A stretch of 64,000 bases of DNA, taken from positions 586,520,001 to 586,584,000 of the forward strand of contig NC_091286.1 of NCBI RefSeq assembly GCF_032444005.1, in the 5' to 3' direction. Made by a program: the position numbers and the translations under genes. Below, in pieces: positions 11,546 to 64,000 of the stretch (the first letter of the stretch is position 1; the number at the start of each line of letters is the position of its first letter). The notes under the pieces were generated by a model, which made no database searches, was not told the origin of the DNA, and worked only from the letters and a program-made list of their open reading frames with translations. Source of the stretch: Ranitomeya imitator (Eukaryota).

Positions 11546-14500
11546 TATACACAACTCTGCAGCACACACAATACTACTGAATGCACAGTACACAAACGCT
11601 CCGCTGCACAAACAGTGCATATACACAACTCTGCAGCACACACAACACTGCTGAATGCACAGTACACAAACGCTCCGCTGCACAAACAGTGCATATACAC
11701 AACTCTGCAGCACACACTACACTGCTGAATGCACAGTACACAAACGCTCTGCTGCACAAACAGTGCATATACACAACTCTGCAGCACACACAACACTGCT
11801 GAATGCACAGTACACAAACGCTCTGCTGCACAAACAGTGCATATACACAACTCTGCAGCACACACTACACTGCTGAATGCACAGTACACAAACGCTCTGC
11901 TGCACAAACAGTGCATATACACAACTCTGCAGCACACACAATACTACTGAATGCACAGTACACAAACGCTCCGCTGCACAAACAGTGCATATACACAACT
12001 CTGCAGCACACACTACACTGCTGAATGCACAGTACACAAACGCTCTGCTGCACAAACAGTACATATACACAACTCTGCAGCACACACAACACTGCTGAAT
12101 GCACAGTACACAAACGCTCTGCTGCACAAACAGTGCATATACACAACTCTGCAGCACACACAATACTACTGAATGCACAGTACACAAACGCTCCGCTGCA
12201 CAAACAGTGCATATACACAACTCTGCAGCACACACAGCACTGCTGAATGCACAGTACACAAACGCTCCGCTGCACAAACAGTGCATATACACAACTCTGC
12301 AGCACACACAACACTGCTGTATGCACAGTACACAAAGGCTCCGCTGCACAAACAGTGCATATACACAACTCTGCAGCACACACAATACTACTGAATGCAC
12401 AGTACACAAACGCTCCGCTGCACAAACAGTGCATATACACAACTCTGCAGCACACACAACACTGCTGAATGCACAGTACACAAACGCTCCGCTGCACAAA
12501 CAGTGCATATACACAACTCTGCAGCACACACAACACTGCTGAATGCACAGTACACAAACGCTCCGCTGCACAAACAGTGCATATACACAACTCTGCAGCA
12601 CACACAACACTGCTGTATGCACAGTACACAAACGCTCCGCTGCACAAACAGTGCATATACACAACTCTGCAGCACACACAACACTGCTGTATGCACAGTA
12701 CACAAACGCTCCGCTGCACAAACAGTGCATATACACAACTCTGCAGCACACACAACACTGCTGTATGCACAGTACACAAACGCTCTGCTGCACAAACAGT
12801 ACATATACACAACTCTGCAGCACACACAACACTGCTGTATGCACAGTACACAAACGCTCTGCTGCACAAACAGTACATATACACAACTCTGCAGCACACA
12901 CAACACTGCTGTATGCACAGTACACAAACGCTCCGCTGCACACAGTATATATACAAACTCTGCAGCACACACAACACTGCTGTATGAACAGTACACAAAC
13001 GCTCCACTACACAAACAGTATATATACACAACTCTGCAGCACACACAACACTGCTGTATGAACAGTACACAAACGCTCTGCTGCACAAACAGTACATATA
13101 CACAACTCTGCAGCACACACAACACTGCTGTATGCACAGTACACAAACGCTCCGCTGCACAAACAGTGCATATACAAACTCTGCAGCACACACAACACTG
13201 CTGTCTGCACAGTACACAAACGCTCCGCTGCACAAACAGTGCATATACACAACTCTGCAGCACACACAACACTGCTGTATGCATAGTACACAAACGCTCC
13301 GCTGCACAAACAGTGCATATACACAACTCTGCAGCACACACAACACTGCTGTATGCACAGTACACAAACGCTCCGCTGCACAAACAGTGCATATACACAA
13401 CTCTGCAGCACACACAACACTGCTGTATGCACAGTACACAAACGCTCCGCTGCACAAACAGTGCATATACACAACTCTGCAGCACACACAACACTGCTGT
13501 ATGCATAGTACACAAACGCTCCGCTGCACAAACAGTGCATATACACAACTCTGCAGCACACACAACACTGCTGTATGCATAGTACACAAACGCTCCGCTG
13601 CACAAACAGTGCATATACACAACTCTGCAGCACACACAACACTGCAGTATGAACAGTACACAAACGCTCCGCTGCACAAACAGTGCATATACACAACTCT
13701 GCAGCACACACAACACTGCTGTATGCACAGTACACAAACGCTCCGCTGCACAAACAGTGCATATACACAACTCTGCAGCACACACAACACTGCTGTATGC
13801 ATAGTACACAAACGCTCCGCTGCACAAACAGTGCATATACACAACTCTGCAGCACACACAACACTGCAGTATGAACAGTACACAAACGCTCCGCTGCACA
13901 AACAGTGCATATACACAACTCTGCAGCACACACATAACTGCTGTATGCACAGTCCATAAACGCTCCGCTGCACAAACAGTACATATACACAACTCTGCAG
14001 CACACACAACACTGCTGAATGCACAGTACACAAACGCTCTGCTGCACAAACAGTGCATATACACAACTCTGCAGCACACACAATACTACTGAATGCACAG
14101 TACACAAACGCTCCGCTGCACAAACAGTGCATATACACAACTCTGCAGCACACACAACACTGCTGTATGAACAGTACACAAATGCTCCGCTGCACAAACA
14201 GTATATATACAAACTCTGCAGCACACACAATACTACTGAATGCACAGTACATAAACGCTCCGCTGCACAAACAGTGCATATACACAACTCTGCAGCACAC
14301 ACAACACTGCTGTATGCATAGTACACAAACGCTCCGCTGCACAAACAGTGCATATACACAACTCTGCAGCACACACAACACTGCAGTATGAACAGTACAC
14401 AAACGCTCCGCTGCACAAACAGTGCATATACACAACTCTGCAGCACACACAACACTGCTGTATGCACAGTACACAAACGCTCCGCTGCACAAACAGTGCA

Positions 14501-17500
14501 TATACACAACTCTGCAGCACACACAACACTGCTGTATGCATAGTACACAAACGCTCCGCTGCACAAACAGTGCATATACACAACTCTGCAGCACACACAA
14601 CACTGCAGTATGAACAGTACACAAACGCTCCGCTGCACAAACAGTGCATATACACAACTCTGCAGCACACACATAACTGCTGTATGCACAGTCCATAAAC
14701 GCTCCGCTGCACAAACAGTACATATACACAACTCTGCAGCACACACAACACTGCTGTATGCACAGTACACAAACGCTCCGCTGCACAAACAGTGCATATA
14801 CAAACTCTGCAGCACACACAACACTGCTGTCTGCACAGTACACAAACGCTCCGCTGCACAAACAGTGCATATACACAACTCTGCAGCACACACAACACTG
14901 CTGTATGCATAGTACACAAACGCTCCGCTGCACAAACAGTGCATATACACAACTCTGCAGCACACACAACACTGCTGTATGCACAGTACACAAACGCTCC
15001 GCTGCACAAACAGTGCATATACACAACTCTGCAGCACACACAACACTGCTGTATGCACAGTACACAAACGCTCTGCTGCACAAACAGTACATATACACAA
15101 CTCTGCAGCACACACAACACTGCTGAATGCACAGTACACAAACGCTCTGCTGCACAAACAGTGCATATACACAACTCTGCAGCACACACAATACTACTGA
15201 ATGCACAGTACACAAACGCTCCGCTGCACAAACAGTGCATATACACAACTCTGCAGCACACACAGCACTGCTGAATGCACAGTACACAAACGCTCCGCTG
15301 CACAAACAGTGCATATACACAACTCTGCAGCACACACAACACTGCTGTATGCACAGTACACAAAGGCTCCGCTGCACAAACAGTGCATATACACAACTCT
15401 GCAGCACACACAATACTACTGAATGCACAGTACACAAACGCTCCGCTGCACAAACAGTGCATATACACAACTCTGCAGCACACACAACACTGCTGAATGC
15501 ACAGTACACAAACGCTCCGCTGCACAAACAGTGCATATACACAACTCTGCAGCACACACAACACTGCTGAATGCACAGTACACAAACGCTCCGCTGCACA
15601 AACAGTGCATATACACAACTCTGCAGCACACACAACACTGCTGTATGCACAGTACACAAACGCTCCGCTGCACAAACAGTGCATATACACAACTCTGCAG
15701 CACACACAACACTGCTGTATGCACAGTACACAAACGCTCCGCTGCACAAACAGTGCATATACACAACTCTGCAGCACACACAACACTGCTGTATGCACAG
15801 TACACAAACGCTCTGCTGCACAAACAGTACATATACACAACTCTGCAGCACACACAACACTGCTGTATGCACAGTACACAAACGCTCTGCTGCACAAACA
15901 GTACATATACACAACTCTGCAGCACACACAACACTGCTGTATGCACAGTACACAAACGCTCCGCTGCACACAGTATATATACAAACTCTGCAGCACACAC
16001 AACACTGCTGTATGAACAGTACACAAACGCTCCACTACACAAACAGTATATATACACAACTCTGCAGCACACACAACACTGCTGTATGAACAGTACACAA
16101 ACGCTCTGCTGCACAAACAGTACATATACACAACTCTGCAGCACACACAACACTGCTGTATGCACAGTACACAAACGCTCCGCTGCACAAACAGTGCATA
16201 TACAAACTCTGCAGCACACACAACACTGCTGTCTGCACAGTACACAAACGCTCCGCTGCACAAACAGTGCATATACACAACTCTGCAGCACACACAACAC
16301 TGCTGTATGCATAGTACACAAACGCTCCGCTGCACAAACAGTGCATATACACAACTCTGCAGCACACACAACACTGCTGTATGCACAGTACACAAACGCT
16401 CCGCTGCACAAACAGTGCATATACACAACTCTGCAGCACACACAACACTGCTGTATGCACAGTACACAAACGCTCCGCTGCACAAACAGTGCATATACAC
16501 AACTCTGCAGCACACACAACACTGCTGTATGCATAGTACACAAACGCTCCGCTGCACAAACAGTGCATATACACAACTCTGCAGCACACACAACACTGCT
16601 GTATGCATAGTACACAAACGCTCCGCTGCACAAACAGTGCATATACACAACTCTGCAGCACACACAACACTGCAGTATGAACAGTACACAAACGCTCCGC
16701 TGCACAAACAGTGCATATACACAACTCTGCAGCACACACAACACTGCTGTATGCACAGTACACAAACGCTCCGCTGCACAAACAGTGCATATACACAACT
16801 CTGCAGCACACACAACACTGCTGTATGCATAGTACACAAACGCTCCGCTGCACAAACAGTGCATATACACAACTCTGCAGCACACACAACACTGCAGTAT
16901 GAACAGTACACAAACGCTCCGCTGCACAAACAGTGCATATACACAACTCTGCAGCACACACATAACTGCTGTATGCACAGTCCATAAACGCTCCGCTGCA
17001 CAAACAGTACATATACACAACTCTGCAGCACACACAACACTGCTGAATGCACAGTACACAAACGCTCTGCTGCACAAACAGTGCATATACACAACTCTGC
17101 AGCACACACAATACTACTGAATGCACAGTACACAAACGCTCCGCTGCACAAACAGTGCATATACACAACTCTGCAGCACACACAACACTGCTGTATGAAC
17201 AGTACACAAATGCTCCGCTGCACAAACAGTATATATACAAACTCTGCAGCACACACAATACTACTGAATGCACAGTACATAAACGCTCCGCTGCACAAAC
17301 AGTGCATATACACAACTCTGCAGCACACACAACACTGCTGTATGCATAGTACACAAACGCTCCGCTGCACAAACAGTGCATATACACAACTCTGCAGCAC
17401 ACACAACACTGCAGTATGAACAGTACACAAACGCTCCGCTGCACAAACAGTGCATATACACAACTCTGCAGCACACACAACACTGCTGTATGCACAGTAC

Positions 17501-18594
17501 ACAAACGCTCCGCTGCACAAACAGTGCATATACACAACTCTGCAGCACACACAACACTGCTGTATGCATAGTACACAAACGCTCCGCTGCACAAACAGTG
17601 CATATACACAACTCTGCAGCACACACAACACTGCAGTATGAACAGTACACAAACGCTCCGCTGCACAAACAGTGCATATACACAACTCTGCAGCACACAC
17701 ATAACTGCTGTATGCACAGTCCATAAACGCTCCGCTGCACAAACAGTACATATACACAACTCTGCAGCACACACAACACTGCTGAATGCACAGTACACAA
17801 ACGCTCTGCTGCACAAACAGTGCATATACACAACTCTGCAGCACACACAACACTGCTGTATGAACAGTACACAAATGCTCCGCTGCACAAACAGTATATA
17901 TACAAACTCTGCAGCACACACAACACTGCTGTATGCACAGTACACAAACGCTCTGCTGCACAAACAGTGCATATACACAACTCTGCAGCACACACAACAC
18001 TGCTGTATGAACAGTACACAAATGCTCCGCTGCACAAACAGTATATATACAAACTCTGCAGCACACACAACACTGCTGTATGCACAGTACACAAACGCTC
18101 TGCTGCACAAACAGTGCATATACACAACTCTGCAGCACACACAACACTGCTGTATGCACAGTACATAAACGCTCCGCTGCACAAACAGTGCATATACACA
18201 ACTCTGCAGCACACACAACACTGCTGAATGCACAGTACACAAACGCTCTGCTGCACAAACAGTGCATATACACAACTCTGCAGCACACACAACACTGCTG
18301 TATGCACAGTACACAAACGCTCTGCTGCACAAACAGTACATATACACAACTCTGCAGCACACACAACACTGCTGTATGAACAGTACACAAACGCTCCGCT
18401 GCACAAACAGTACATATACACAACTCTGCAGCACACACAACACTGCTGTATGAACAGTACACAAACGCTCCGCTGCACAAACAGTGCATATACACAACTC
18501 TGCAGCACACACAACACTGCTGTATGAACAGTACACAAACGCTCCGCTGCACAAACAGTACATATACACAACTCTGCAGCACACACAACACTGC
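11546..18594. repeat. 74-bp satellite, ~95 copies, in the last CEP63 intron
   Basis: Unit cacaactctgcagcacacacaacactgctgtatgcacagtacacaaacgctccgctgcacaaacagtgcatata; ORF-track starts recur every 74 nt. Confidence 0.98.
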
Positions 18595-18849
18595 TCTCTG
18601 CACTGTAAACTCACAATTCTGCAGTATGCACATGTATAGAGTAATAGTTGTGACCCATATATACATATGCACAGCTAATGAGTGAAGAAAAATCTCCACT
18701 AAAAATGCCAGTTTTGCCTCTGCGTTATGATCTGCCAAGAGATGCAGAAATAAACACTTGTGTGCACATACCCTTGAAGTCAGGAAAATACCATGTTTTT
18801 GGACTTTTGTTTAGCTTTAACTTGCAGGATGCGTTTTCTGTTTCTGCAG

Positions 18850-19011
18850 CTCCCACTACCACCCTCCTCCTCACTGAACACCATTGCATCAAGGTTTCTT
18901 CAGGAGGAAGAGCTCCGGTCACAGGACCTTCTTCAGCGCCTGGACTCTCACATTGAGGAATTAAAGCAGGAAAGTCAGCGGACAGTGCAGCACTTCAGCA
19001 ACCTAAAATAA
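18850..19011 (+). CDS. CEP63: CEP63 last coding exon
   Basis: tttctgcag|CTC acceptor; encodes ...[42 protein letters not shown], which I recognise as the CEP63 C-terminus (FLEEEELRS...LDAHIEELKRESEKTV), distinct from paralogue DEUP1; adjacency to KY agrees. Confidence 0.92.
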
Positions 19012-20541: not shown

Positions 20542-20690
20542 NNNNNNNNNNNNNNNNNNNNNNNNNNNNNNNNNNNNNNNNNNNNNNNNNNNNNNNNNNN
20601 NNNNNNNNNNNNNNNNNNNNNNNNNNNNNNNNNNNNNNNNNNNNNNNNNNNNNNNNNNNNNNNNNNNNNNNNNNNNNNNNNNNNNNNNNN
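20542..20690. other. Assembly gap (149 N)
   Basis: Run of N bases. Confidence 1.
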
Positions 20691-29870: not shown

Positions 29871-30441
29871 TACTAAAATAAGTACTTTAGGCAGTGAAAC
29901 ATTCAAAAAGAAGAATAGCGTTTTACGTACGTGGCTTTTCAAAGCAAGTCTACAGCCTCTTCAAGACTAATAGAGCTAGTTTGTATTGGGAACTCTGATG
30001 TCATATCCACTTTCATGCTTCCATTAACCAGTTGTAAGAACTGACTTAATATTGTTTTAACAAAATAGTTGAGCCATAATGTAACAAGAGATTTTGGCGA
30101 CTCTAGGTGCTCCGTACACGCCTCGATGACTTAAAGCCAGCGGATCCCCCAAGAAATAAACTGAACTTTCTTCCGCTACCCATGCTTTCAGTAAAGCGTC
30201 CGGTCAGCATTGTTACGCTATAAACCTGCAGATTAACAGTGTTTGAGGATGTGACTGGTTCCCTTAACACAAAAAACTTTTTTAAGCAATGGATCATTTT
30301 GTTATGATGATACATTGACTTTAAGTGTTAGGAAGCAGAAGTTCAGAGATGGAAGACAGGCGAAATGTAGAGAGCGCAGGAGGCAGCCGGTGATAAAGAA
30401 GACTTCTCTACATTGATCCTAAGGTCGAAAATAATTACACC

Positions 30442-30447
30442 TTTATT
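30442..30447 (-). promoter_or_regulatory. Candidate KY polyadenylation signal (AATAAA)
   Basis: tttatt on the + strand ~500 nt past the KY stop; motif only. Confidence 0.3.
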
Positions 30448-30939
30448 TAAAACTGTCCATATCATAAGTGTATGTTGTATGTTACAATACTTGCTTTCTG
30501 TCCTTACAGTGTAATAAGATGCATTGCGTTGAATGTACGTTGCCGTTCACAGCGGTACAATGCAGCCATTCATTCTGCAGGACTATTGCTCAATCACTCA
30601 CAAATAAAGCACTAATGGCAGGAAAATGATAATATATACAGTCTCATCAGTAAGAATAAACGTCTGCTTATTAAATGTCCATGTCGAAAGCACTCGGAAA
30701 ATGTGGCTATTAAAAAAAAAAAAGAAAAAAAGTTGTCAGATAACCCCGGTAAATACACTATAACAGTTTTAACCGTTAGCTGAAATCCTGATAAAGTGCA
30801 TTAATATGACACACTAAAAAGCTTTCAATGTAGTTGATCATCCATATCTAGTTTTAGCACCTCTGACAAGTGTTCTCATTAAGATGATTCATATTGTAAG
30901 GGAGCTGGTGCATTGGAAAGGAGATTCCGATTTGCAAAG

Positions 30940-33347
30940 CTAAGAGGAATATGAGCTTTCTATTAAACGCTGATGAACTGCACCCTTCACCTGATAGCTG
31001 AGCACTAGAGCATAATTCTTGTTCAGATTATTTGTCACTAGCACTTGAATGTCCTTGCTTCCAGCTGTGCTACAGACCCCTTCCCAAAATCCATCTCGAC
31101 TTAATGTCAGAGGCCAAAAGTTCTTGCTTTTGATGGCCACTGCTGCCAATCCTTTGGCCTTAATTCTGAACTGTACCTCACTGTTTGCTGGCAGGATCTC
31201 AGTCCTTGGCTCCAGCAGTTCATAATTCATATTCCAAGCACTATATCTTATCGGAAAGAATGGCCACCGTACTTTTGTATTGGAGCAACATAAGAGATAA
31301 TTGCAAGCATAGTCATAAACATTGCTTGGGTCTGTCGTCTTCTTAGTGCAAATCTTCAGCACATAGTTGCCAGCTTTGGGCAGCTGGATTTCAAATTCAA
31401 CTCTGCCCTCCTTCTCTGCTTGGAAAATGTACCTTCTTCTTGCTTCCTCTGATGTGATGTCGTCAGAGTGGAGGGTCGCCATAACGTCAATCTTTTCATC
31501 CAAAGCAAAACTGATGCAGGAACGACCGTCGTCTGTTTGAATTGTTGGGTCCAGGTGGGATGGACGAAGAAGTCCTTTCTTATCAGAGAGATAACTAGGC
31601 CCAACAGGGTTGCATAACTCAAGTGGTAGCAGGGGCCATTTTACTTGAGCGTTAATGCAAGAAATTATATAATTACAAGCAAACTTAAAACTTCCCTGCT
31701 CAGACTCGGTGTAAATCTTCAGAACATACATCCCAGCTTGTGGCAGCTGTACGTGGAACTCCACTCTGTTCTGTCTCTGGACTTGTAGGATATGTCTCCT
31801 TTCACCCTCTTCTGTCAAAAGCACATCTTCAGATTGCAGTCTGGCAAATATAGCCATCTCTTTCTTAAGGGTGAAAGCTAGAGAGCACCGTCCATCACTA
31901 GTGTGCATGATTGGTTCTGTTTGGGAAGGTTGGAAAAGACCTTTTTTCTCAGATAATGGTGTAGGCCCACCAGGGTTTTGGAGTATGTAAGGGAATGGCG
32001 GCCATGCTACCTTTGGGTTTGAACATGATATAAGATAACTACATACAAGCTCATAGTTTCCTGGCTGAAATTTGTTATCTGCATACACTCTTAACTCATA
32101 TGAACCACTTTTAGGAAGCTGGATGTGGAACTCAACCTGCCGCTGTTTATGAGTTTGGAGAATGTATCTTCTTTCCATTTGGCTATTCCACTTGTTATCA
32201 TCTGAGTGTAAAGTAGCTAAACAGCTCATATCTTTGTCGAGAGAAAAATTTAAGGAGCAACGTCCATCTGGGCTATTAATTACTTGCCCCAACTGTGATG
32301 GCTGGATGAAACTTTTCTTGTCTGTTGTATTGTTAGAACCTACGGGTATGTGCAGTACAACAGGTGCCTCATTGCTGGATGTTTCGATACTGGAACAACA
32401 AATCAAGTAATTACCAATATATTCAAAGTTGATAGGTGAGGATTTACTGTCAGCAAATATCTGAAGAACATAAGATCCTGATTGAGGTAGGCGGACTTGT
32501 AGTTCCAAGTGCTGTCCTCTTTGTGTTTGCATAATGTAGCGCTTCCCTCCACAGTCACTTAGAGATGGATCATCGTTCAGAAGAGCTGTCAGAATTTTGA
32601 GATTATCTTTCAATGTAAATGATATACTTAACTGTCCGTTTGAAGAGTAAATAATTGGATCCCGACACGATGGTTGCAGAAGGCCTTTCTTCTCCATTAG
32701 GGCAGTTGGCCCAACAGGGTTTTGCAGCTTCTTGGGAAAGGGTGGCCATGACACGTCTGGATTTGTACATATGATAAGGTAATTACAAAAGCATTCAAAC
32801 TTTCCTTGGCCGCTGGAACTGTGCATTTTTAAGGCATAGTGCCCTGGTTGAGGAAGATGGACCTTAAACTCTACTCTGTTGCCTCGGAGAGTTTGCAGGA
32901 CATGTTTCCTTTCATCTCCAGGTTTGATAAGTTCACTATGCAAAGTTGCTATTACAACATTTCTTTTGGCTAGTGTGAAGCCGATAGTACAGCGGCCATC
33001 CGGAGTGTTAATCACTGGGTCACGGGAAGTAAGCTGAAGAAACCCCTTCTTGTCTGTCAGCCAACTTGGGCCAACCACAACATCTAATTCTCTAGGGATC
33101 CTTAATACAGGATCTACAGAGCCGCAACTGATTATATATTCTACAACGGTTTCATATGTTTCTTTTGTGCTGTCATAAGGTTTGGTATAAAGTTCCAGTC
33201 GATGTCTGCCTGTGGCTTGTGGATACACCTCCAGCTGCATTCCATGTTTTGTTAGGATCAGAAGACCAGGCTTCTCCGTTTTATTTAAAGTAAAGGAAAA
33301 AAGAGCAGGTAAATGTCCTTCGATGGAAAATGTGGCTTTTCCGTTAA
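30940..33347 (-). CDS. KY: KY terminal exon (801 aa) with five tandem Ig-like modules
   Basis: ttgcag|TT acceptor; (V)NGKATFSIEG...MQLEVYP start and ...WPLTLSRDGFWEGVCSTAG...LSYQV end match the KY C-terminus as I recall it; 2,408 nt stop-free. Confidence 0.93.
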
Positions 33348-33558
33348 CTGCAAGAGATTGGAAAAGTCGTCAACAACCACGTTTATGTTCTAGCTACCAT
33401 ATTTTACCATTCGTAGCAGTTTTGGTTAACAATAATTCAAAAGAAGCACCATGTTTAATCAATGTTGTGTCTAAATATAACATTTTCAACCAAGCCACCC
33501 AAATATGAAAAAGGCCAGAAGAATATCCCCATCAAGGTGTTTATATGGCTTGCTATAC

Positions 33559-33749
33559 CTGTTTCTACCTGGAGAGTCTCTGGATAGGATGCTATCAGCC
33601 CGGCATTGTAGAAGCTGCTCTTGTGACATAAGTTCCCTTCAAACTGTTTGAGTGAAAGCGGAACTTGTAATAGTTGCCAGTTCTGGTTATCAGGGAAATG
33701 TTCTTCTATGAATAAGGCTGGATGCGTCAGGAAATAAAATTCATTGTAC
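33559..33749 (-). CDS. KY: KY exon (YNEFYFLTHPALFIEEHFPD...VET)
   Basis: tgtgcag|G acceptor and G|gtatag donor; 191 nt, phase 2-1; diagnostic KY motif. Confidence 0.95.
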
Positions 33750-34539
33750 CTGCACAAAAATTACATTTCATGACCTACATTGCCAACATTTCATCTTTTG
33801 TCACGTAGTATAAAATTTGAATTGTTCAGATACCAAATTGGGAAGGGAATTTGAGTATCTGGTCAACACCACATAGAGCTAGGGTATATTTCCAAATCCC
33901 CTTAAGCAGTCAAATGACTAGTAAAAACAATTTGAAAATCAACTGGTTACCACCTGATAAGATATTTCTGAACTTGCAAACGACACCTAAAATGAAAATA
34001 GAGAACAGGCCAATGCATCAGGTAGTTATTTGGCACAAAAACTGCTTGAAGCATCGCAAATGTTTTGCACACGTCACAGTTACGCAAAAAGTTTGTAACT
34101 GTAAGCATGTTTACATCTGTCCCTACCAGTTCCTCCTCTTTTTAAAATACCATAGATTGAGTTCGGTTTGTAATTTGTTAGAATTTGCCCCACAGGAGTG
34201 GCATAAATCACAACAGAAATGTACATTGGTCAAGCCTTGGAGTGGCGGATGGCAGTTAAAGGATGTGCCAAATCTAATCAAGACTGGCGTAGAAAAATAA
34301 ATCGGGGTCTATGTTTCTATAGATCTAAAGGTTCCCTGTTTTTGTAGATTATAGCTCACTAATGCACATTCCAGCTTTTAGATGGCCATTTGGAAAGGTG
34401 ATAGAACAATAAAAAATGCATTACATGCCTGTTATAGAACTTGCAGTTTTGGCGCTGTTGCTCGCATGCTAGCTGCCATTTTCTGTGTACCTATCTACAG
34501 AAGACCGCTACATTCAGCATCTGGCTGCAGCAGTATATG

Positions 34540-39453: not shown

Positions 39454-40268
39454 CTGATGCAAGTCAGAGCTCCCATGACCCAGCCAGGATGGATATTAAA
39501 TCTGAGAAATCAAAACTAGAAACCCTAAGAATTCAGTCATTCAGTCACTCAACAGCTATTTAGAAGGGAAGATTACACTTTCCTGGGTATCTATCGATTC
39601 CGTGGCTTGGTCGCTGGAGTCGAAGAATCTGTCACAGGGAATACCATGGTAATATCAGATCAGGGTTGTGATTGTGCCAGCTGCAAGTGTGGAAGGATGG
39701 GGAGTACATCTCAGAGATTATGTAGTCTAGGGAGTCTGGTCGGAAAAGGAGTAAGACTATTCATCAAACATGAAAGCGCTACTGGCAGTAAAGAATGCAG
39801 TAGTGAGTTATGTCAGACACTCAGATGACGGTTGCTTACCACACCCATCAGGGAGGTGCAAGATCTCGCCCTCTGATGTTGGTGACAGAGAAAATCCTTC
39901 GGTTTGCGGAACAGCATCAATTAGTACTGACCGCGCTACACATAAGAGTGAAGGAAAACAAGAAAGCAGACTTCTTCGGTAGAAATACATAAAAGGGCGT
40001 GGCCTGAGAGTCCATGTGAGCGGACGTGCGGCTGTGAGCTCCCGCCGCTGTATATCTTAAAATCCTGCAGAGCCGCTGCTGTTTGTTCCCTGAGGGGGCT
40101 TACCGGCTGCGGGGAGACTTGTGGAGCCTGGTGGCGCTGAGCGGTAGCGCTGAAACCGGCGAACATGACAAGGAGACGGCAGAAGGACGCAGGAGCCGGG
40201 GATGCAGGCGCAATCCAAGATGGCGCCGACACAAGGGAGAAAAGGAGAACGCCGCATGCAGAAAGCGT

Positions 40269-41201
40269 ATGGAGGTGGCGGCAAAGCTCCAGCAGTTTGC
40301 GAGAGCGGAGGCCGCAGAGGAGGGAGCCGGAGCTGATACCGAAGAGGAGGAGGAGGAGAGCCCAGCAGGAGAACATGAGGTACAAAAGGGGAGAAAGGAG
40401 AGTAAAATGGCGGTAGCAGAAGGGGGACCCGAGGAAATGGCGCCAGAAGCTGAGCCTACCTTAAGAGACGTTTTTGCGCTGGTTTCTTCATGTAAACAGT
40501 CTCTGACCTTACAGATACAGGAGGTTAAGGGAGACACAGCCCAGATAAACGCAGCCATGCAGAAGATTGACAAACGTGTGGGGGAGGTAGAGGAGAGAGT
40601 GAGCACTGCAGAAGACCATATAGTGCAGCTGCAAAAAGCAGAGAAAAAGTTCACTCAAGCAATAGCTGAATTGGCGGCGAAAAATGAGGACCTTGAGAAC
40701 AGGTCCAGAAGAAACAATATTCGCATAGTGGGCATCCCTGAAAAAGCTGAAGGGAGGAATCCAACGGAATATATTGAAAACTGGCTGTTAGAGACTTTTG
40801 GAGATATGGCGCTAACAAAAGTGTTCGCGGTAGAGAGAGCGCATAGGGTCCCACCGAAACCACCTGTCCCTGGAGCGAATCCCCGTACCATGCTCGCCAA
40901 AATTCTAAATTATAGAGACAGAGACATTATCCTGAGGAAGGCCAGAGACATGACGGATCTGACAGTTGAAGGCCAAAAGATTGCTATCTACCCAGACTAT
41001 TCTACTTTGGTGCAGAGACAACGGATGATGTTCACGGGTATAAAGAGACGGCTGAGGGAGCTGGGAGTGCAATACTCTATGATGTTTCCAGCAAGACTGA
41101 GGGTGGTGGCGTTTGATAAAATTCACTTTTTTCAGAAGCCGGAGGAAGCTACCCAGTGGATCGATATCAATGCTAAAAAGCTTAAAGGAAAAGGAGACTG
41201 A
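40269..41201 (+). CDS. L1 ORF1p (coiled coil, RRM, CTD); start codon uncertain
   Basis: LENRSRRNNIRIVGIPE and IYPDYS...YSMMFPARLRV motifs; first in-frame ATG at 40269; an out-of-frame ATG at 40165 could be the true start if a frameshift has occurred. Confidence 0.88.
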   Translation: MEVAAKLQQFARAEAAEEGAGADTEEEEEESPAGEHEVQKGRKESKMAVAEGGPEEMAPEAEPTLRDVFALVSSCKQSLTLQIQEVKGDTAQINAAMQKIDKRVGEVEERVSTAEDHIVQLQKAEKKFTQAIAELAAKNEDLENRSRRNNIRIVGIPEKAEGRNPTEYIENWLLETFGDMALTKVFAVERAHRVPPKPPVPGANPRTMLAKILNYRDRDIILRKARDMTDLTVEGQKIAIYPDYSTLVQRQRMMFTGIKRRLRELGVQYSMMFPARLRVVAFDKIHFFQKPEEATQWIDINAKKLKGKGD

Positions 41202-41273
41202 AACTGTGGGAAGAGTCTGATTAGTGGGAAGTTAGACAGCTCGTGCTCAAAAAAGATGATACTTTGAGTGAAG

Positions 41274-44200
41274 ATGAGCCAAGTGATGGGGACCCGTTTT
41301 AAGATTTTGTGCTGGAATGTGAGAGGCCTAGGGAAGAAATCCAGACGTGCCGCGTGTTTGCAACATGTAAGAGACCAACGGGCCTCAATGATTTGCTTGC
41401 TGGAGACGCATTTGGTAAGGGAAAAGGTGGATGTTCTGAATAGACGGTGGATCCAGAAGGGATATCATTCTACCTTCTCCACGTATGCAAGAGGAGTCTC
41501 AATCTTGGTTCCAGCGGGAGTTCAGTATGAGGAGGTGAAGGTATATGTGGATGTGGATGGGCAGTACGTACTAATACAGTGTATATTGTATGGAGTGATG
41601 TTGTGTGTTGCCGCGATGTATATTCCGCCCCCCTACTCTAGCAGGAAAATTAGAGAAGTAATGGAGCGAGTGGAAAGATGGGGACCGACACCGTTAATAA
41701 TTATCGGGGATCTAAACAACATCTGTGATGAATATTGGGACAAAAATAAAAATACTCAGAATAGGTCGGAGGGACACATAACAACATTTGGCACCTATAT
41801 ACAGGAGATAGGTATGATTGATCTTTGGAGGGTCAGACATATTGGAGAGAGAGGGTACTCATGTTATTCACCAGCGCATGCCACGCTCTCTAGGATTGAT
41901 ATGGCTCTGGGTAACAGGATTTTGGACACGTTGGTTGGGGCGGTGAGATATCTGCCAAGGGCCCTGTCAGACCATAGTCCAATTGAAGTAGAGGTTAGAT
42001 TGGAGGGGGCACGTTCGACAAGTGGGAGAGAATGGAAGATTCATCCCAATTGGTTACAGAGTATTGAGTTGGAAAGTATAGGACGGGAGGTGGCGGAATT
42101 CTCTCTCTTAAATGATGGAAGCACTGATGCTCTTACAATCTGGGATGCAATGAAGGCGTATCTGAGGGGACTACTGTTTAGGGACATTAGTAGGTGTAAG
42201 CGGAGGACGAGGGAGGCAGAAAAAGCGGCAATTGAGGAGTTGAAGGAAGCAGAAGACGGGATGGCCACACTGGGAACTCCTGAGGCAGAGAGAAGGATGA
42301 AAAATGCACAAAATCATTTGGAAAAAATTCTGTTAGGCAAAGCTGAGAGGAAACGGGATTTCCAAAGGGTATTGTTTTATCAGGAGGGAGAAACAGTGGG
42401 ACATATGCTGTCGGTAGTGGCTGCTGCTCAGAGAGGGTCTTCATATATACACTCTTTGGAATCTGCAAGTGGAGGTAGAATGAAGGAAACGCCTGAAATC
42501 TTGAGGGCCTTCGCGGACTTCTATGCAGATTTGTATTCCTCTCGGGTTGGTGAATTGGTCGAGGACACATTGACTTTCTTGGAGGGTCTGGATCTGCCGA
42601 GACTGAATGAGGCAGATAGGGAGAGCCTTGAGGCCCCTATCACTGAGGAGGAATTGAGTCGGGCATTGATGTCTATGACTAATGGGAAGGCGCCTGGGAT
42701 TGATGGGCTACCAGCTGAGATCTATAAAGGTTTGGCAGAAGTGTTGATTCCTAGATTAAAAATGGTACTGGAGGAAGCTAGGTCCTGTGGGTGCTTGCCA
42801 GCCTCTATGAGAGAGGCCATAATAGTGGTTATTCCAAAGGAGGATAAGGACTTGGGGAAACCGGAGTCTTACTGCCCAATTTCTTTACTAATTATTGATG
42901 TCAAGCATCTGGCCAAAGTGTTGGCTCTCCGCCTCTCTAGTGTTATTGCGAGTCTGGTGCACTCGGACCAATCTGGCTTTATGCCTGATAGATCAACGGC
43001 GATCAATTTGCGGAGATTATATGTAAATTTGCAGGTAGAGTCTGATAACTGTGGTCGAAGAGTGATTGCATCGCTAGATGCGCATAAGGCGTTTGACAGT
43101 GTTGAATGGGGATACCTCTGGCAGGTGCTGGAACGTATGGGGTTTGGTCCGCAGTTTGTGGCCTGGATACAGCTGTTGTATTCATTACCGTCGGCTAGAA
43201 TTAGAGTAAACGGGGAGCTGTCTCGACCTATAGAGCTGGCTAGGGGCACTAGGCAGGGATGCCCGCTCTCACCCCTCCTGTTCGCGTTGGCTGTAGAACC
43301 TCTTGCTGCTAAGATTCGGCAGTCTGATAGGGTCCCTGGGTTTAGGTATGGGAAAGTAGAGGAAAAAATAGCGTTATACGCGGATGATGTTTTGCTGTTC
43401 CTGGCGGATCCAGACGATTCACTAAGAGGGGCCATTGAAATTGTTGAGAGATTTGGTACTGTGTCGGGACTAACAATTAATTGGGATAAGTCGGTTCTTT
43501 TTAGGGTGGATGACGTTGGAGAGAATGTGAGTGAGGATGTTGGGGATGAGAGGCTAAAGGTGGTTTCCCAATTTAAATACCTTGGAATATGGATTTCGGT
43601 GCCAATTGAGGAGTTCCTGCAAAGGAATTTGACTCCTGTTATGGGGGTACTCAAGGCGAAGGTAGATGCCTGGAATAAACTACATCTATCGGTCGTCGGT
43701 AGGGTAAACCTTATTAAAATGGTCCTGATGCCAAAAATTCTATATGTTCTACGTAACGCACCAATTTGGATCCCTCGGGGGAAGTTCAGGCAGATTAATG
43801 CCCTCTTTAGAAGTTTGATATGGGGAAGACAATATCCACGTATTAGCCTGGAGACGCTTCAGCGACCCAAGGAAGATGGTGGATTGGCTTTGCCCAACCC
43901 GGAAATATACTTCCTTGCGGCCCAGAGCCAGCATTTGAAGGGCTGGGCGCGAGGGGCGTCATCCAGTGCAGTACAACATCTAATGGAAGAGGTGACGGAC
44001 CGACGACCGGTGGTCAGGTGTTTGGAGGATGGCTCCTTGGGCGCTTTGGGGAGAGTATACCCAACCCTGTTCCTGATTCGCAAATTATGGAATAGACTAA
44101 GGCAGATTCGCGGGGTTACAGGGTTGACTAGATTCACACCGATATGGTCTAACAACAATTTAAAGGAATTTGAGGCCTTGGGGGGACTGATGGAATGGCA

Positions 44201-45038
44201 GAATAAGGGAATTTGCTTTGTTCACCAGATAATCCAGCAGCAGGCATTGAAGTCCTTTTCCCAATTGCAGGTAGAATTTGGTCTGCGATCCACAGGGGAA
44301 TATCAGTATGCGCAGATGAGACATGCCTTTAGAGCTCAGAATAAAAAGGTTGATATCAGTGTTCAAGATGATATAGTGTTGGAGTATGTGTGTGGTGACG
44401 GGACTACAAGGGGAGTTATTTCCACTCTGTATAAGGACCTTATGCACACGTTTTTGCTAGATTTCCCTATAAAGGCGAGAGCTAAGTGGGAGAGGGACGT
44501 GGGGTCGATGGAGAATGAAACCTGGGAATTGGTGATGGAGTGGGTTCCGCGACTATCCTTGAGTGAACCATATAGACTCTCGCAGCTATATATTCTGCAT
44601 AGAGTATATAAATCTCCGGAAGTGCTATACAAAGCGGAATTGCGTGCCAATTCTGAGTGCCCGAGGTGTGCGAGTGAGAATGCAGGAATATATCACATGA
44701 TGTGGACGTGTCCTAGGCTGGCTGCTTTTTGGGTGGTGGTTTTGAGCCAGGTTGAAGTAGCGTATAAGTGTAGAGTTCTTAGAGACCCGATAGTATGCGT
44801 GCTGGGATATGTGGAAGAAATTGGAGTTGACAATACTTGGAAGATTGCAATCGCTAGGCTACTATACATGGCCAGGAAAGTAATAGCACGAAATTGGATA
44901 AATGCGGAACCACCTGCGAGAAGGGAATTTCTCCAATATGTTCAACATGGTCTAAAATTGGAAAAGGGGGTGTACAAAAAAAGGGGGAAAATAGAAATGT
45001 TTAATAAGATGTGGTCTCCTTGGCTTGAATTGGATTGA
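41274..45038 (+). CDS. Intact L1 ORF2p (APE endonuclease, RT, C-terminal Cys-rich motif), ~1,254 aa
   Basis: WNVRGL, GDLN, SDH; KAPGIDG, LDAHKAFD, GTRQGCPLSPLLF, YADD; CPRC...HMMWTC; no stops. Confidence 0.97.
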   Translation: MSQVMGTRFKILCWNVRGLGKKSRRAACLQHVRDQRASMICLLETHLVREKVDVLNRRWIQKGYHSTFSTYARGVSILVPAGVQYEEVKVYVDVDGQYVLIQCILYGVMLCVAAMYIPPPYSSRKIREVMERVERWGPTPLIIIGDLNNICDEYWDKNKNTQNRSEGHITTFGTYIQEIGMIDLWRVRHIGERGYSCYSPAHATLSRIDMALGNRILDTLVGAVRYLPRALSDHSPIEVEVRLEGARSTSGREWKIHPNWLQSIELESIGREVAEFSLLNDGSTDALTIWDAMKAYLRGLLFRDISRCKRRTREAEKAAIEELKEAEDGMATLGTPEAERRMKNAQNHLEKILLGKAERKRDFQRVLFYQEGETVGHMLSVVAAAQRGSSYIHSLESASGGRMKETPEILRAFADFYADLYSSRVGELVEDTLTFLEGLDLPRLNEADRESLEAPITEEELSRALMSMTNGKAPGIDGLPAEIYKGLAEVLIPRLKMVLEEARSCGCLPASMREAIIVVIPKEDKDLGKPESYCPISLLIIDVKHLAKVLALRLSSVIASLVHSDQSGFMPDRSTAINLRRLYVNLQVESDNCGRRVIASLDAHKAFDSVEWGYLWQVLERMGFGPQFVAWIQLLYSLPSARIRVNGELSRPIELARGTRQGCPLSPLLFALAVEPLAAKIRQSDRVPGFRYGKVEEKIALYADDVLLFLADPDDSLRGAIEIVERFGTVSGLTINWDKSVLFRVDDVGENVSEDVGDERLKVVSQFKYLGIWISVPIEEFLQRNLTPVMGVLKAKVDAWNKLHLSVVGRVNLIKMVLMPKILYVLRNAPIWIPRGKFRQINALFRSLIWGRQYPRISLETLQRPKEDGGLALPNPEIYFLAAQSQHLKGWARGASSSAVQHLMEEVTDRRPVVRCLEDGSLGALGRVYPTLFLIRKLWNRLRQIRGVTGLTRFTPIWSNNNLKEFEALGGLMEWQNKGICFVHQIIQQQALKSFSQLQVEFGLRSTGEYQYAQMRHAFRAQNKKVDISVQDDIVLEYVCGDGTTRGVISTLYKDLMHTFLLDFPIKARAKWERDVGSMENETWELVMEWVPRLSLSEPYRLSQLYILHRVYKSPEVLYKAELRANSECPRCASENAGIYHMMWTCPRLAAFWVVVLSQVEVAYKCRVLRDPIVCVLGYVEEIGVDNTWKIAIARLLYMARKVIARNWINAEPPARREFLQYVQHGLKLEKGVYKKRGKIEMFNKMWSPWLELD

Positions 45039-48497: not shown

Positions 48498-50384
48498 TAG
48501 TGTTGAGCGATACCGTCCGATACTTGAAAGCATCGGTATCGGATAGTATCGGCCGATACCCGAAAAATATTGGATATCGCCGATATCCGATACCAATACA
48601 AGTCAATGGGACATCAAGTATCGGAAGGTATTCTCATGGTTCCCAGGGTCTGAAGGAGAGGAAACTCTCCTTCAGGCCCTGGGATCCATAGGGATGTGGA
48701 AAATAAAGAATTAAAATAAAAAATATTGATATGTTTACCTCTCCGGCGGCCCCTGAACTCAGCGCGGGTAACCGGCAGGCTTCTTTGTTCAAAATCAGCG
48801 CTTTTAGGACCTGAGAATCACGTCCCGGCTTCTGATTGGTCGCGGGCCGCCCATGTGACCGCCACGCGACCAATCACAAGCCGCGACGTCACCGCAAGCT
48901 ATTAACGCGCTCATTTTTAAAAATGAGCGCGTTAATAGCTTGCGGTGACGTCGCGGCTTGTGATTGGTCGCGGCCACGCGACCAATCACAAGCCGCTACG
49001 TCTTTGAAAGCCATTAACGCGCTCATTTTTAAAAATGAGCGCGTTAATAGCTTGCGGTGACGTCGCGGCTTGTGATTGGTCGCGGCCACGCGACCAATCA
49101 CAAGCCGCTACGTCTTTGAAAGCCATTAACGCGCTCATTTTTAAAAATGAGCGCGTTAATAGCTTGCGGTGACGTCGCGGCTTGTGATTGGTCGCGGCCA
49201 CGCGACCAATCACAAGCCGCTACGTCTTTGAAAGCCATTAACGCGCTCATTTTTAAAAATGAGCGCGTTAATAGCTTGCGGTGACGTCGCGGCTTGTGAT
49301 TGGTCGCGGCCACGCGACCAATCACAAGCCGCTACGTCTTTGAAAGCCATTAACGCGCTCATTTTTAAAAATGAGCGCGTTAATAGCTTGCGGTGACGTC
49401 ACGGCTTGTGATTGGTCGCGTGGCCGCGACCAATCACAAGCCGCTACGTCTTTGAAAGTCATTAACGCGCTCATTTTTAAAAATGAGCGCGTTAATAGCT
49501 TGCGGTGACGTCGCGGCTTGTGATTGGTCGCGGCCACGCGACCAATCACAAGCCGCTACGTCTTTGAAAGCCATTAACGCGCTCATTTTTAAAAATGAGC
49601 GCGTTAATAGCTTGCGGTGACGTCGCGGCTTGTGATTGGTCGCGTGGCCGCGACCAATCACAAGCCGCTACGTCTTTGAAAGTCATTAACGCGCTCATTT
49701 TTAAAAATGAGCGCGTTAATAGCTTGCGGTGACGTCGCGGCTTGTGATTGGTCGCGGCCACGCGACCAATCACAAGCCGCTACGTCTTTGAAAGCCATTA
49801 ACGCGCTCATTTTTAAAAATGAGCACGTTAATAGCTTGCGGTGACGTCGCGGCTTGTGATTGGTCGCGGCCACGCGACCAATCACAAGCCGCTACGTCTT
49901 TGAAAGCCATTAACGCGCTCATTTTTAAAAATGAGCGCGTTAATAGCTTGTGGTGACGTCGCGGCTTGTGATTGGTCGCGTGGCCGCGACCAATCACAAG
50001 CCGCTACGTCTTTGAAAGTCATTAACGCGCTCATTTTTCAAAAATGAGTGCGCTAATAGCTTGCGGTGACGTCGCGGCTTGTGATTGGTCGCGTGGCGGT
50101 CACATGGGCGGCCCGCGACCAATCAGAAGCCGGGACGTGATTCTCAGGTCCTAAAAGCGCTGATTTTGAACAACGAAGCCTGCCGGTTACCCGCGCTGAG
50201 TCCAGGGGCCGCCGGAGAGGTAAATATATCAATATTTTTTATTTTAATTCTTTATTTTACACATCTCTATGTATCCGATACCGATACCCGATACCACAAA
50301 AGTATCGGATCTCGGTATCGGAATTCCGATACCGCAAGTATCGGCCGATACCCGATACTTGCGGTATCGGAATGCTCAACACTA
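48498..50384. mobile_element. Non-autonomous hAT-type fold-back element
   Basis: Exact 8-bp TSD ctcaggag (48490-48497 / 50385-50392); TIR tagtgttgagc; long inverted inner arms (~48690-48870 vs ~50090-50260). Confidence 0.92.
48868..50095. repeat. 112-bp tandem array of palindromic modules (11 centres)
   Basis: Each unit has the 34-bp palindrome ttaacgcgctcattttt|aaaaatgagcgcgttaa and a 20-bp-stem hairpin gcggcttgtgattggtcgcg-NNNN-cgcgaccaatcacaagccgc; exact 112-nt period. Confidence 0.97.
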
Positions 50385-51270: not shown

Positions 51271-51459
51271 CGAAAATTAAACTTACTACTACTGCTGTCT
51301 GTAAGTCCTGCTCCCCACGTAGAGTCTAGAAGATGCCATTTCTTGTTTAGATAAACCGCATTCCAGGCATGGTTTGTTTCGTCCGAGAACGTCTGGCCTA
51401 ACTCATAGCAGTGGCCTTTAGAATAGCCACCAATTTTTAGGCACTTTATGGCAGCAAGT
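51271..51459 (-). CDS. KY: KY exon with catalytic His and Asp (GYSKG...NHAWNAV...LDSTWGAG)
   Basis: ctccag|A acceptor and CG|gtaagt donor; 189 nt, phase 2-2. Confidence 0.95.
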
Positions 51460-51801
51460 CTGGAGGTTGGATGAAAATATAGGTAAGTGTGTTCATCATT
51501 GTTTTTTTATTCATTTATTTTTTTTTGCGAGAATAATTGAGTTTTACCATTCTGATAAGAGTACATTCATGTGTGCTCGAGGCAGCATGTTCAACCGAAA
51601 GATGGTCCACAAGCAGCAAGCAGTTTATGAAATCGTTGGACATTGATCGCCTGGATACTAGGGATTGTTTCATTTAATTACTATACAAGCGCCTGCTTTT
51701 TTAAGTAAAGGTCACATCTCCTAGTCTATGCCACCAAACTTACCGCGCCATAGCTCTCTGATATTTAATACATGGCATAAGTAAACTTCATTGTCTCCTA
51801 C

Positions 51802-51919
51802 CTGCACATGGTCTCAAAGAGACTTGCATATCCCTCACAGGCTCCTTTTCCTGTAAGCAGTATCTGGTTGGGGTCACCGCACCACTTTGTCTTATCCTCC
51901 AGAGCTTCCAAGTCATATT
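51802..51919 (-). CDS. KY: KY exon with catalytic Cys (EYDL...GKGACEGYASLFETMCR)
   Basis: tacgcag|AA acceptor and AG|gtagga donor; 118 nt, phase 1-2. Confidence 0.95.
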
Positions 51920-51962
51920 CTGCGTAAGATGGGAAATGCATTTAGCTCCGAACATACATGAG

Positions 51963-57476: not shown

Positions 57477-57585
57477 CAATGTGGTGACAAATCCAAATCC
57501 AGATGGCGCGGACTTTCTCCAGGTCAGTTCGTGCCATCTTCACCAGTGATTTCACCAACTCCTCCACTGTATTTGGTTTTGCAAC
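57477..57585 (-). CDS. KY: KY exon (VAKPNTVEELVKSL...DLEKVRAIWIWICHHI)
   Basis: tttgtag|GTT acceptor and G|gtgaga donor; 109 nt, phase 0-1. Confidence 0.95.
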
Positions 57586-62099: not shown

Positions 62100-63238
62100 T
62101 CAGTCTTGATAATTCTGACCTTGGCTTTATTCCAATTTGTGCTTCTGCCTCCCTCCTTGATTGTCTACCTGATGCTTGCTCTGCTCATAGTTCTAACTTT
62201 AACTCAGTTTCTTTCTGTTCTCTAGTCTCATCCTCTGACCAGTCATATTCTGACTGAATATCTGATGGCAAGTGACAACCCTCAGCTCCATTCCTGATCA
62301 CACCAGTATTCCAGCAGCGCTACCGCAGCCATACTGACTATTTTGAGGATCTTCTTACAGTAAAATGCAGACCTCCTGCAGAGGCTATAGCGTGAACCTT
62401 TCATCAAAGGTTTGGGGCTTAGAGAATCCACCTTCTGCTACATGATCATAGCTCGGGTATTAGTTTGTCAGCATGTTTCATCACTGACACAGTGTCATTT
62501 TTACCATATGTTTCTTAGAAACCAATTCAGTTTCTGTTGTGATTTTGCAAAAACATCTGATTGACAAACATAATTACCAAGGTTTTGCTACCACTGGGTA
62601 CAAATCCTTCATAATACATTGTTTTACTTGTAACTATTTTTACAAACTGAACCTACCGCCGTTAGGACACACTATTGTGATTTTCCTGCATTTTGTCGAC
62701 AAGCTATATAATCTTAATTCCTTTTTACTTTGGTTGGCTAATGAAAGCAATATGTAAGAGAACATAATATGATTTTTTAAAAAAGTGGTCTGATACCTAT
62801 GAAGACATCCTGGTTCTATAAAGGTGTTTGAGAAGTGACAACACCTTCAGTCACAGTCACTGTTCCTAACACTAGAGTGAAACGTATTCTCATCAGGGGG
62901 CGGTGATAGAAGCAGTGTGAGTGATACCAGTGCCGACTCATGATAATGTCCTGTTTCAGGAGATGACGATAGACATTGCGGAGAAGTGAGTGCAGCCACG
63001 GCCTCCTGTGACGTCTTATTTGAGACTCCTCTCAAATGAAACGTCACAAGAAGTAAAGTTAAAAAAAAAAACACATATAGGAAATAGCATGATAGAGATA
63101 TGGTATAGAGCGACACTAATTCTAAAACTGTTTAAGATTATTTATTTATAAAGGGCTTTATAGGTATTGGATCACCCCTTTAATTTTTAAATCAAAAGAC
63201 TTTGAGAAAATGTATAGATACCTTCAAGTTTTTCTTAC

Positions 63239-63321
63239 CTGTACAGCATATGCATCAAGTTTCTCGAAGTTCTTCAAGTTGACGGGCATTGACTTAAGAC
63301 AGCATTTATCCCATGGGTAAG
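63239..63321 (-). CDS. KY: KY exon (AYPWDKCCLKSMPVNLKNFEKLDAYAVQ); upstream exons lie beyond the window
   Basis: ttttcag|CT acceptor and CAG|gtaaga donor; 83 nt, phase 1-0; YPWD and FEKLD motifs. Confidence 0.9.
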
Positions 63322-64000
63322 CTGAAAAAATATTCTTTAGTGAATGATACATGTAAAAGTTTGACAGCAAATGTTGTGATTTTTATTAATATTCTAGAAA
63401 AAAAGGAACTATGATTTAGCCCAACAATAAAGAGGAAACGAGGACTTAATTTCAGATTTGGATCTGTTTCAGAACATCGTTATCCTTCATTCCTTGGACA
63501 AGACTGTGCCTCATGTACTCTGCGGCATTCTACACAAGTTGACTTGATGTTGTCATTATCACTTAACTTCATATTCTTTAAAATATTTTTTGCCTCTATT
63601 CTGCCAATAATGTATGATTATATTATATAATATAAATGATATGATTATTATTGCCAATATGGACAAAGTGATACTTTAAGTGCCCCCTAAGTGCCAGAAT
63701 TGAGCTTTTTGTGATAATCACACACATTTGATTAGTAGTCTTCCCTCTATGAGCATGCAAGCAGAGACAGATGTCAATCACTCATTAGGACCGCCCACTG
63801 GACTCCTAAGTATTGTAAGAACTGGGATTTAAATGAATAAAATACAGACTATACAAAATCTTCTACGATATATCTGTCTACTCAGCTTCTATTGCCTTAC
63901 GACATATTGCCTGCAGATCAGACATTTTGAATATGACAGATTTCCTGTAAATTATTTCTATGAGATAAGTTCCGCTCTTTTTCCTGTCATGTCTATGGGC

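Follow-up and report, generated by a model that had tools for sequence, protein, structure and literature searches.

Five tandem Ig-like_KY modules in the kyphoscoliosis peptidase gene of Ranitomeya imitator, an old amphibian-wide variant of KY

We analysed a 64,000-nucleotide stretch of the Ranitomeya imitator genome (contig NC_091286.1, positions 586,520,001 to 586,584,000 of the forward strand; hereafter the window, numbered from its first letter), which carries on its reverse strand six exons of the gene for kyphoscoliosis peptidase (KY). The long terminal coding exon of this gene encodes five tandem immunoglobulin (Ig)-like modules of the Ig-like_KY family (PF23265), an arrangement that is an old variant found throughout the amphibians and no novelty of the R. 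imitator genome. KY is a disease gene, known from the mouse ky mutant and from a human KY myopathy. To our knowledge its molecular function is still unknown, and its Ig-like region has no assigned role.

The top database matches to the terminal exon product were a 1140-aa protein of Ranitomeya variabilis named “kyphoscoliosis peptidase” (P0001, 98% identity, aligned over its residues 340-1140) and an unnamed 1065-aa R. imitator product (99%). P0001 was used as a stand-in for the full-length protein, and the window exons were treated singly. By exon-by-exon tblastn mapping the six exons correspond to P0001 residues about 107-1140 (Table 1), and the resulting ~1,034 aa agree with the ~1,030 aa of KY originally predicted for the window; the exons for the first ~106 residues lie outside it, past its end. 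The terminal exon begins at an acceptor AG at 33349-33348 (cag/TT at 33350-33346), and its frame is open throughout. P0001 matches the transglutaminase-like core family PF01841 (E=3.9e-18), and the three core motifs, GKGACEGYASLF, NHAWNAV and LLDSTWG, are all encoded by the window's own exons. A donor, gtaagt, follows the exon with the His and Asp motifs at 51270-51265, and the penultimate exon falls in the protein between the core and the first, divergent PF23265 domain (module 0). The 17.5-kb KY intron also houses two repeats: an L1-type long interspersed nuclear element (LINE) antisense to KY (40083-45038, plus strand), in which open reading frame (ORF) 1 (372 aa, L1 RNA-binding domain-like) and ORF2 (1256 aa, endonuclease plus reverse transcriptase) both appear intact, and a 112-bp tandem array at 48861-50093 (11 copies, 96% match).

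Table 1. Features of the KY locus in the window, with ratios of nonsynonymous to synonymous substitution rates (dN/dS) for the modules and tail
Feature	Position	Strand	Description and evidence	dN/dS
KY exon, P0001 residues 107-139	63230..63328	-	tblastn 94%	
KY exon, P0001 residues 137-172	57478..57585	-	tblastn 100%	
Exon with Cys motif (GKGACEGYASLF) of transglutaminase-like core	51786..51926, approximate	-	tblastn, P0001 residues 171-217	
Exon with His (NHAWNAV) and Asp (LLDSTWG) of transglutaminase-like core	51271..51476, approximate	-	tblastn, P0001 residues 207-275	
Penultimate exon, 192 nt	33559..33750	-	P0001 residues 275-338; tblastn 100%; X2 and X18 RNA contigs	
Last intron, 211 nt	33348..33558	-	GT..AG; joint 33347/33559 in X2 and X18 contigs; sequence	
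KY terminal coding exon	30940..33347	-	801 full codons plus split Val codon at 5' end; stop 30942-30940; open frame	
Module 0, C-terminal part	33076..33345	-	divergent first PF23265 domain, holds LEVYP, starts in preceding exon; weak module-HMM and Pfam stretch; AlphaFold2 strands at exon residues 4-74	
Module R1, VGPSW	32716..33075	-	120 aa, exon residues 91-210; HMM 185 bits	0.135
Module R2, VGPTA	32344..32715	-	124 aa, exon residues 211-334; HMM 190 bits	0.170
R2-R3 junction, predicted disordered, anuran-specific hinge	32311..32385	-	exon residues 321-345; pLDDT <50; anuran sequence variable	
Module R3, VGSNN	31972..32343	-	124 aa, exon residues 335-458; HMM 207 bits	0.073
Module R4, GGPTP	31606..31971	-	122 aa, exon residues 459-580; HMM 198 bits	0.110
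Module R5, VGPSY	31246..31605	-	120 aa, exon residues 581-700; HMM 191 bits	0.082
C-terminal tail domain	30943..31245	-	101 aa, beta-sandwich outside PF23265; AlphaFold2 strands at residues 708-786; aligned in all orthologues	0.188
3' untranslated region, minimum extent	30232..30939	-	X2 contig, record 11, unbroken over 30232-33347	
CEP63 last coding exon (CEP152-binding coiled coil), convergent with KY	18850..19011	+	PF25771 E=4e-21; stop 19009-19011	

As a BLASTP comparison of the exon product with itself returned nothing beyond the identity match, the repeats were delimited by module alignment and a module hidden Markov model (HMM). Five consecutive units, R1 to R5, were recovered over window positions 33075-31246, with the lengths and starting residues originally predicted and with pairwise identities of 36-48%. 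PF23265 concurs, matching the exon product at E=2.7e-96 with 319 bits in total over six stretches (cut-off 27 bits), the sixth of which is module 0; the match of the five modules is far beyond chance. Beyond R5 lies a tail domain common to all KY proteins. The original prediction had also given every repeat the same four motifs, and this holds roughly, except that R2, the most diverged module, reads NGQLSISF and LELQV and has no WP linker, its C-terminal W-P-x-F-P linker having been lost in anurans. The best conserved of the internal modules is R4, with a mean identity to other anurans of 78%. The residues described as shared by R1, R3 and R5 (DKK, ATLHS) and by R2 and R4 (LQNP.GPT..EKKGL.QPS) are likewise present in the window sequence. 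Tandem Repeats Finder (TRF) detected no DNA-level tandem repeat in the exon, as expected of an old duplication. An assembly artefact was ruled out, given that the modules are only ~40% identical and that independent transcripts and 18 orthologues are concordant.

Mouse, marmot, opossum, bird, turtle and lizard KY each comprise module 0 plus one canonical module, in keeping with the single module that the original prediction had given for the 661-aa human protein. By Pfam, mouse KY has two PF23265 stretches and frog KY six; the four extra modules make the frog protein exceed amniote KY by about 480 aa, close to the ~490 aa predicted. This amniote comparison covered mouse, marmot, opossum, bird and reptile KY, with human KY left out, and two Logan protein clusters of 661 aa (P0066 and P0078), possibly mammalian, entered the bulk module count only.

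Both a gene tree and the position of the neighbouring gene CEP63 identify the window gene as a true KY orthologue and not a paralogue. In a quick IQ-TREE analysis (71 proteins by 551 columns, comprising the N-terminal part, last module and tail), one clade (support 98) united the amphibian genes with five modules; it had the topology of the species tree and was sister to amniote KY (Shimodaira-Hasegawa-like approximate likelihood ratio test, SH-aLRT, 91), and the other amphibian KY-family clades branched outside this group. The last coding exon of CEP63, 65% identical to that of Xenopus laevis, lies ~12 kb past the KY stop on the opposite strand, so that the two genes stand tail-to-tail. CEP63 is likewise tail-to-tail with the five-module genes of X. 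laevis and Hymenochirus, and in the bird Rhea with a one-module KY that is flanked at its far end by an Eph receptor. The six PF23265 stretches against two in mammalian KY are a variant feature and no argument against orthology. It could nevertheless be proposed that the window gene is a KY-like paralogue and that amphibian KY proper is the one-module gene of the caecilians Microcaecilia and Geotrypetes, which NCBI names “kyphoscoliosis peptidase”. Several KY-family genes with one to five modules do exist in amphibians, and a support of 91 for the sister relation to amniote KY is not decisive. However, it is the five-module gene that has CEP63 directly downstream in the window, X. laevis and Hymenochirus, exactly as at bird KY, and it is the five-module clade whose branching follows that of the species and which joins amniote KY. 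Synteny largely refutes the paralogue reading, which we regard as very improbable.

Exactly five canonical modules were counted in all 18 amphibian orthologues, which comprise 14 anurans (from Ascaphus to Ranitomeya), three salamanders and one caecilian and range from 1087 to 1227 aa; all are already annotated. A single canonical module was found in chimaera, sharks and rays, in bichir, sturgeon, gar and teleosts, in lungfish KY, and in all sampled amniotes. Two were found in a coelacanth model that ends at a module boundary, and one, two, three or four in amphibian KY-like paralogues. The original prediction had named five modules in mammalian, Xenopus and fish KY as the outcome that would deny novelty; mammals and fishes lack five modules, but X. 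laevis has them in an annotated protein of 1133 aa. Upon inspection of the DNA, a 528-aa gene model of Hymenochirus boettgeri with one module (P0038) proved to omit four modules, and it represents an annotation artefact because the genomic exon (L005 21063-23441) is unbroken over 794 aa. The KY terminal exon is prone to such mis-modelling in annotation, and the Hymenochirus artefact could mislead domain counts.

The comparison was extended to the wider family by searching 1.84 billion representatives exhaustively and without profiles. KY proteins of amphioxus contain five to eight PF23265 domains, and one shark and one lungfish “KY-like” protein contain three each. These tandem arrays in distant relatives indicate that module number is labile across the KY family, and the array of amphibian KY represents a re-expansion specific to that lineage. 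The finding is a modest one: the five-module proteins are present among RefSeq and UniProt models, Ig-like_KY already has a curated Pfam entry, and amphioxus has multi-module relatives. No description of the expansion turned up in the literature searched on amphibian KY, Xenopus KY and KY-like.

The extra modules are under purifying selection. From a single pairwise comparison with a 2948-nt transcript-like Logan contig of a related frog (88% protein identity), dN/dS was estimated at 0.07-0.17 per module (Table 1), and each extra module is 65-78% conserved across anurans, on par with module 0, R5 and the tail. Together with the intact frame and the presence of five modules in all three amphibian orders, these values bear out the proposal of an old expansion maintained by selection. 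The repeats are also retained in transcripts: a 4450-nt contig from RNA run X2 (~95% identical, from a related species) covers 30232-33347 without a gap or internal splicing and is spliced to the upstream exons, and the 33347/33559 junction recurs in a contig from run X18 (99% or more identical). Such spliced junctions show that processed RNA lies behind the contigs. In a further contig, X15, the terminal exon (33348) is joined straight to exon-4 sequence, skipping the 192-nt penultimate exon in frame with the loss of 64 aa; this product may represent an alternative isoform.

These data bear directly on whether the extra modules are a tolerated neutral insertion, acting as a passive spacer, or are even absent from the mature protein. 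The lower conservation of R2 relative to the other modules would fit that account, as would the Hymenochirus gene model without four of the modules. Yet dN/dS in every extra module is as low as in the ancestral parts of the protein, the frame and the count of five have persisted in 18 species whose last common ancestor stands at the base of living amphibians, the whole exon is present in RNA contigs, and the Hymenochirus model is contradicted by its own genomic exon. The selection and RNA data already contradict a neutral insertion, which we regard as very improbable.

With respect to the history of the modules, trees built by quick searches on 124 columns united the R5 sequences of the three amphibian orders, by position, in one clade. 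The ancestral terminal module is R5, which corresponds to the single amniote and fish module and was not copied from an “A” unit. R1-R4 of five-module genes likewise formed one clade of internal modules (support 96), within which each position was strongly supported as a clade among anurans; the branching among R1-R4 was left unresolved. The extra modules would have arisen on the stem lineage of living amphibians through tandem duplications within the exon, whose order would no longer be recoverable.

The original prediction had instead read the array as A-B-A-B-A, implying duplication of a two-module unit (AB to ABAB, followed by a further A) with R1 and R3 descending from one lineage and R2 and R4 from another. 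Several observations are compatible with this scheme. In approximately unbiased (AU) tests, holding r2 and r4 together gave a log-likelihood 2.35 higher than the free tree (p-AU 0.539), and holding r1 and r3 together cost only 0.02 (p-AU 0.507). Anuran r2 and r4 pair weakly (support 76) and have VGPT..L.EKKGL in common, and the single weak repeat pair at the DNA level in the exon, 25 nt at 76% identity, links 32301-32325 in R3 to 33033-33057 in R1, which lies 732 nt away, the length of exactly two modules. The alternative pairings, however, fit equally well, with log-likelihoods lower than the free tree by 1.73 for r1 and r2 (p-AU 0.482) and by 0.25 for r3 and r4 (p-AU 0.487), so that no pairing is rejected. 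Nor do identities between positions alternate, with means of 45.5 for r1-r3 and for r2-r4 compared to 48.3 for r1-r4 and 46.4 for r3-r4, and R5 falls outside the internal-module clade. The motifs cited for the alternation are uninformative on order because they are ancestral (ATLHS, with amniote counterpart ASLHSD), a general consensus of all modules (EKxGLLQPS and W-P-x-F-P..NP) or species-specific (other anurans lack the D of DKK in R1 and R5). The 25-nt match itself could reflect chance together with shared codons. The alternating order is not supported by these results, and we consider a two-module duplication unlikely, if less so than the paralogue and neutral readings discussed above.

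Related arrays among the amphibian paralogues point to further events of this kind. The internal modules of the anuran KY-like paralogue are sister to its own terminal module (support 96), which identifies that array as a second, independent expansion. In the four-module KY-like genes of the salamanders Lissotriton (P0021) and Ambystoma (P0022), the backbone and the last module fall with the one-module paralogues of salamanders, while internal modules 1-3 are placed inside the group of internal modules from five-module KY. Such a combination of a paralogue backbone with KY-type internal modules suggests that paralogues on one chromosome have exchanged sequence by recombination or gene conversion. 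KY-family genes of R. variabilis extend over more than 100 kb, and no neighbor gene was found within 10 kb of the X. laevis KY-like paralogue.

Structure prediction was applied to a module pair and to the whole exon product. For R3-R4, AlphaFold2 with a 118-row alignment of module pairs (predicted local distance difference test, pLDDT, 91.3; predicted template-modelling score, pTM, 0.87) yielded two seven-stranded beta-sandwiches, each with one short helix, in a definite relative orientation. The whole exon product, modelled with 19 aligned orthologues, was predicted as seven beta-sandwich domains (pLDDT 79.9). Its pLDDT fell below 50 only at residues 263-268 (a short R2 loop), at the R2-R3 junction (Table 1) and at the extreme C-terminus. 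At this junction the sequence W-P-x-F-P..NP VGPSWL.EKKG has been swapped in all frogs, and in anurans only, for a variable stretch rich in Ser, Glu and Pro; salamanders and the caecilian retain WPPFP..LQNP VGPS. A PDB sequence-profile search with the exon product gave nothing relevant, and a Pfam scan up to E=1 reported no filamin family. Foldseek searches with the two-module model returned generic tandem-Ig matches only, at template-modelling scores of about 0.25, with titin and NCAM tandems among those listed. Among solved folds the nearest are filamin-type Ig repeats (Z 7.5-8, root-mean-square deviation 2.6-3.2 over ~88 residues), together with a central-pair protein chain that aligns with both modules of the pair model (Z 9.6). 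These matches reflect a shared Ig-like arrangement and no family membership.

Taken together, we put the probability that the gene is a KY orthologue with an ancient, amphibian-wide array of five modules under selection at roughly 0.85. Several points weigh against this view. The sister relation to amniote KY has an SH-aLRT of only 91 in a quick tree, and monophyly of all amphibian KY-family genes is just borderline worse (p-AU 0.054), a result that leaves either side of the amphibian-amniote split conceivable for the origin of the paralogues. The two-module coelacanth model, cut off at its end, leaves room for an expansion that began earlier among the sarcopterygians and was later lost. The module tree did not recover r1-r3 as positional orthologues when anurans were compared with salamanders or the caecilian, and a measure of parallel duplication or concerted evolution is therefore still conceivable. 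The RNA evidence consists of assembled contigs whose library types are not on record, the longest of them from a related species, and carries no level or tissue information. Finally, with a pTM of 0.51 for the whole exon, the overall shape of the array is not fixed by the model.

What the array does can be proposed more tentatively. Each module would fold as a filamin-like beta-sandwich, and the conserved W-P-x-F-P..NP linker would join adjacent modules in a fixed orientation, with anurans alone having replaced the R2-R3 linker by a variable, disordered hinge. The array would probably then form a longer, partly jointed, semi-rigid scaffold arm, roughly four Ig domains beyond the amniote length, which would set the transglutaminase-like head farther from the conserved tail or add protein-binding surfaces at the Z-disc. 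Based on predicted structures, we advance this longer arm as a possibility that falls somewhat short of even odds. The specific proposal that it is a Z-disc or filamin C-binding arm found no support, as nothing found ties the modules to FLNC. In work on mouse and zebrafish KY (PMC5493368, PMC6078408), the protein, expressed in skeletal muscle and localised to the Z-disc, is reported to pick up FLNC and IGFN1 when used as a whole as bait.

A broader and more doubtful hypothesis is that module number in the KY family is a selected, evolvable setting of length or valency, with the array serving as a spacer tuned to amphibian Z-disc or cytoskeletal geometry. As parts of the same speculative picture, amphibians would have amplified modules within the exon at least two times independently (from one to five in KY and from one to four in anuran KY-like), shuffled modules between neighboring paralogues in salamanders, and acquired the anuran hinge. 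If this is true, genes with one, two, three, four or five modules would constitute a natural allelic series for working out KY function. The amphibian series, conserved and selected, could be used to probe the role of arm length or module number in Z-disc targeting, in FLNC and IGFN1 binding, or in mechanosensing.

The remainder of the window is rich in repeats and mobile elements. A 74-bp satellite (11545-18607, 95.6 copies, 95% match) with strong GC and AT skew ends ~240 bp before the CEP63 last coding exon, and a run of 149 N, an assembly gap or mask, lies between CEP63 and KY at 20542-20690. Two Tc1/Sleeping-Beauty-like transposase ORFs (2652-3674, plus strand; 4860-5897, minus strand) are located within 1890-7360 among arrays of 30-bp units (1890-2286, 3892-4606 and 6257-7360), for which TRF also reported 59- and 89-bp periods. 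A piggyBac-type transposase ORF of 414 aa occupies 9112-10356 on the minus strand (PF13843 DDE_Tnp_1_7, E=2.8e-66).

Comparison with known systems places the frog protein closest to mammalian and avian KY, with which it shares the transglutaminase-like core with Cys, His and Asp, module 0, the terminal module, the tail, the terminal-exon layout and the CEP63 neighbor. The mammalian and avian proteins measure 650-700 aa with two PF23265 stretches, whereas frog KY, at ~1140 aa, has six stretches including four extra internal modules; the disordered R2-R3 hinge is a feature of anuran KY that differs from amniote KY. Amphibian KY-like paralogues (LOC143808524 of R. variabilis, 1014 aa; X. laevis, 948 aa; salamanders, 892-927 aa) have the same domain types and C-terminal tandem Ig-like_KY modules, but carry one to four canonical modules and are 36-46% identical to five-module KY. 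KY proteins of amphioxus (Branchiostoma, 1152-1902 aa) resemble the amphibian ones in their tandem arrays of five to eight PF23265 domains; of two that were scanned, P0179 matches the transglutaminase core, and no core match was reported for P0175. They differ in module counts and extra regions and are only 24-27% identical, and homology with the amphibian protein at the level of the arrays is not established. Filamin and titin Ig rods share the predicted fold and the beads-on-a-string tandem arrangement, the nearest being the filamin repeats of TRIM45, FLNB and FLNC d14-15. They have no sequence relationship to the KY modules, which are distinguished by their own short helix and W-P-x-F-P linker.

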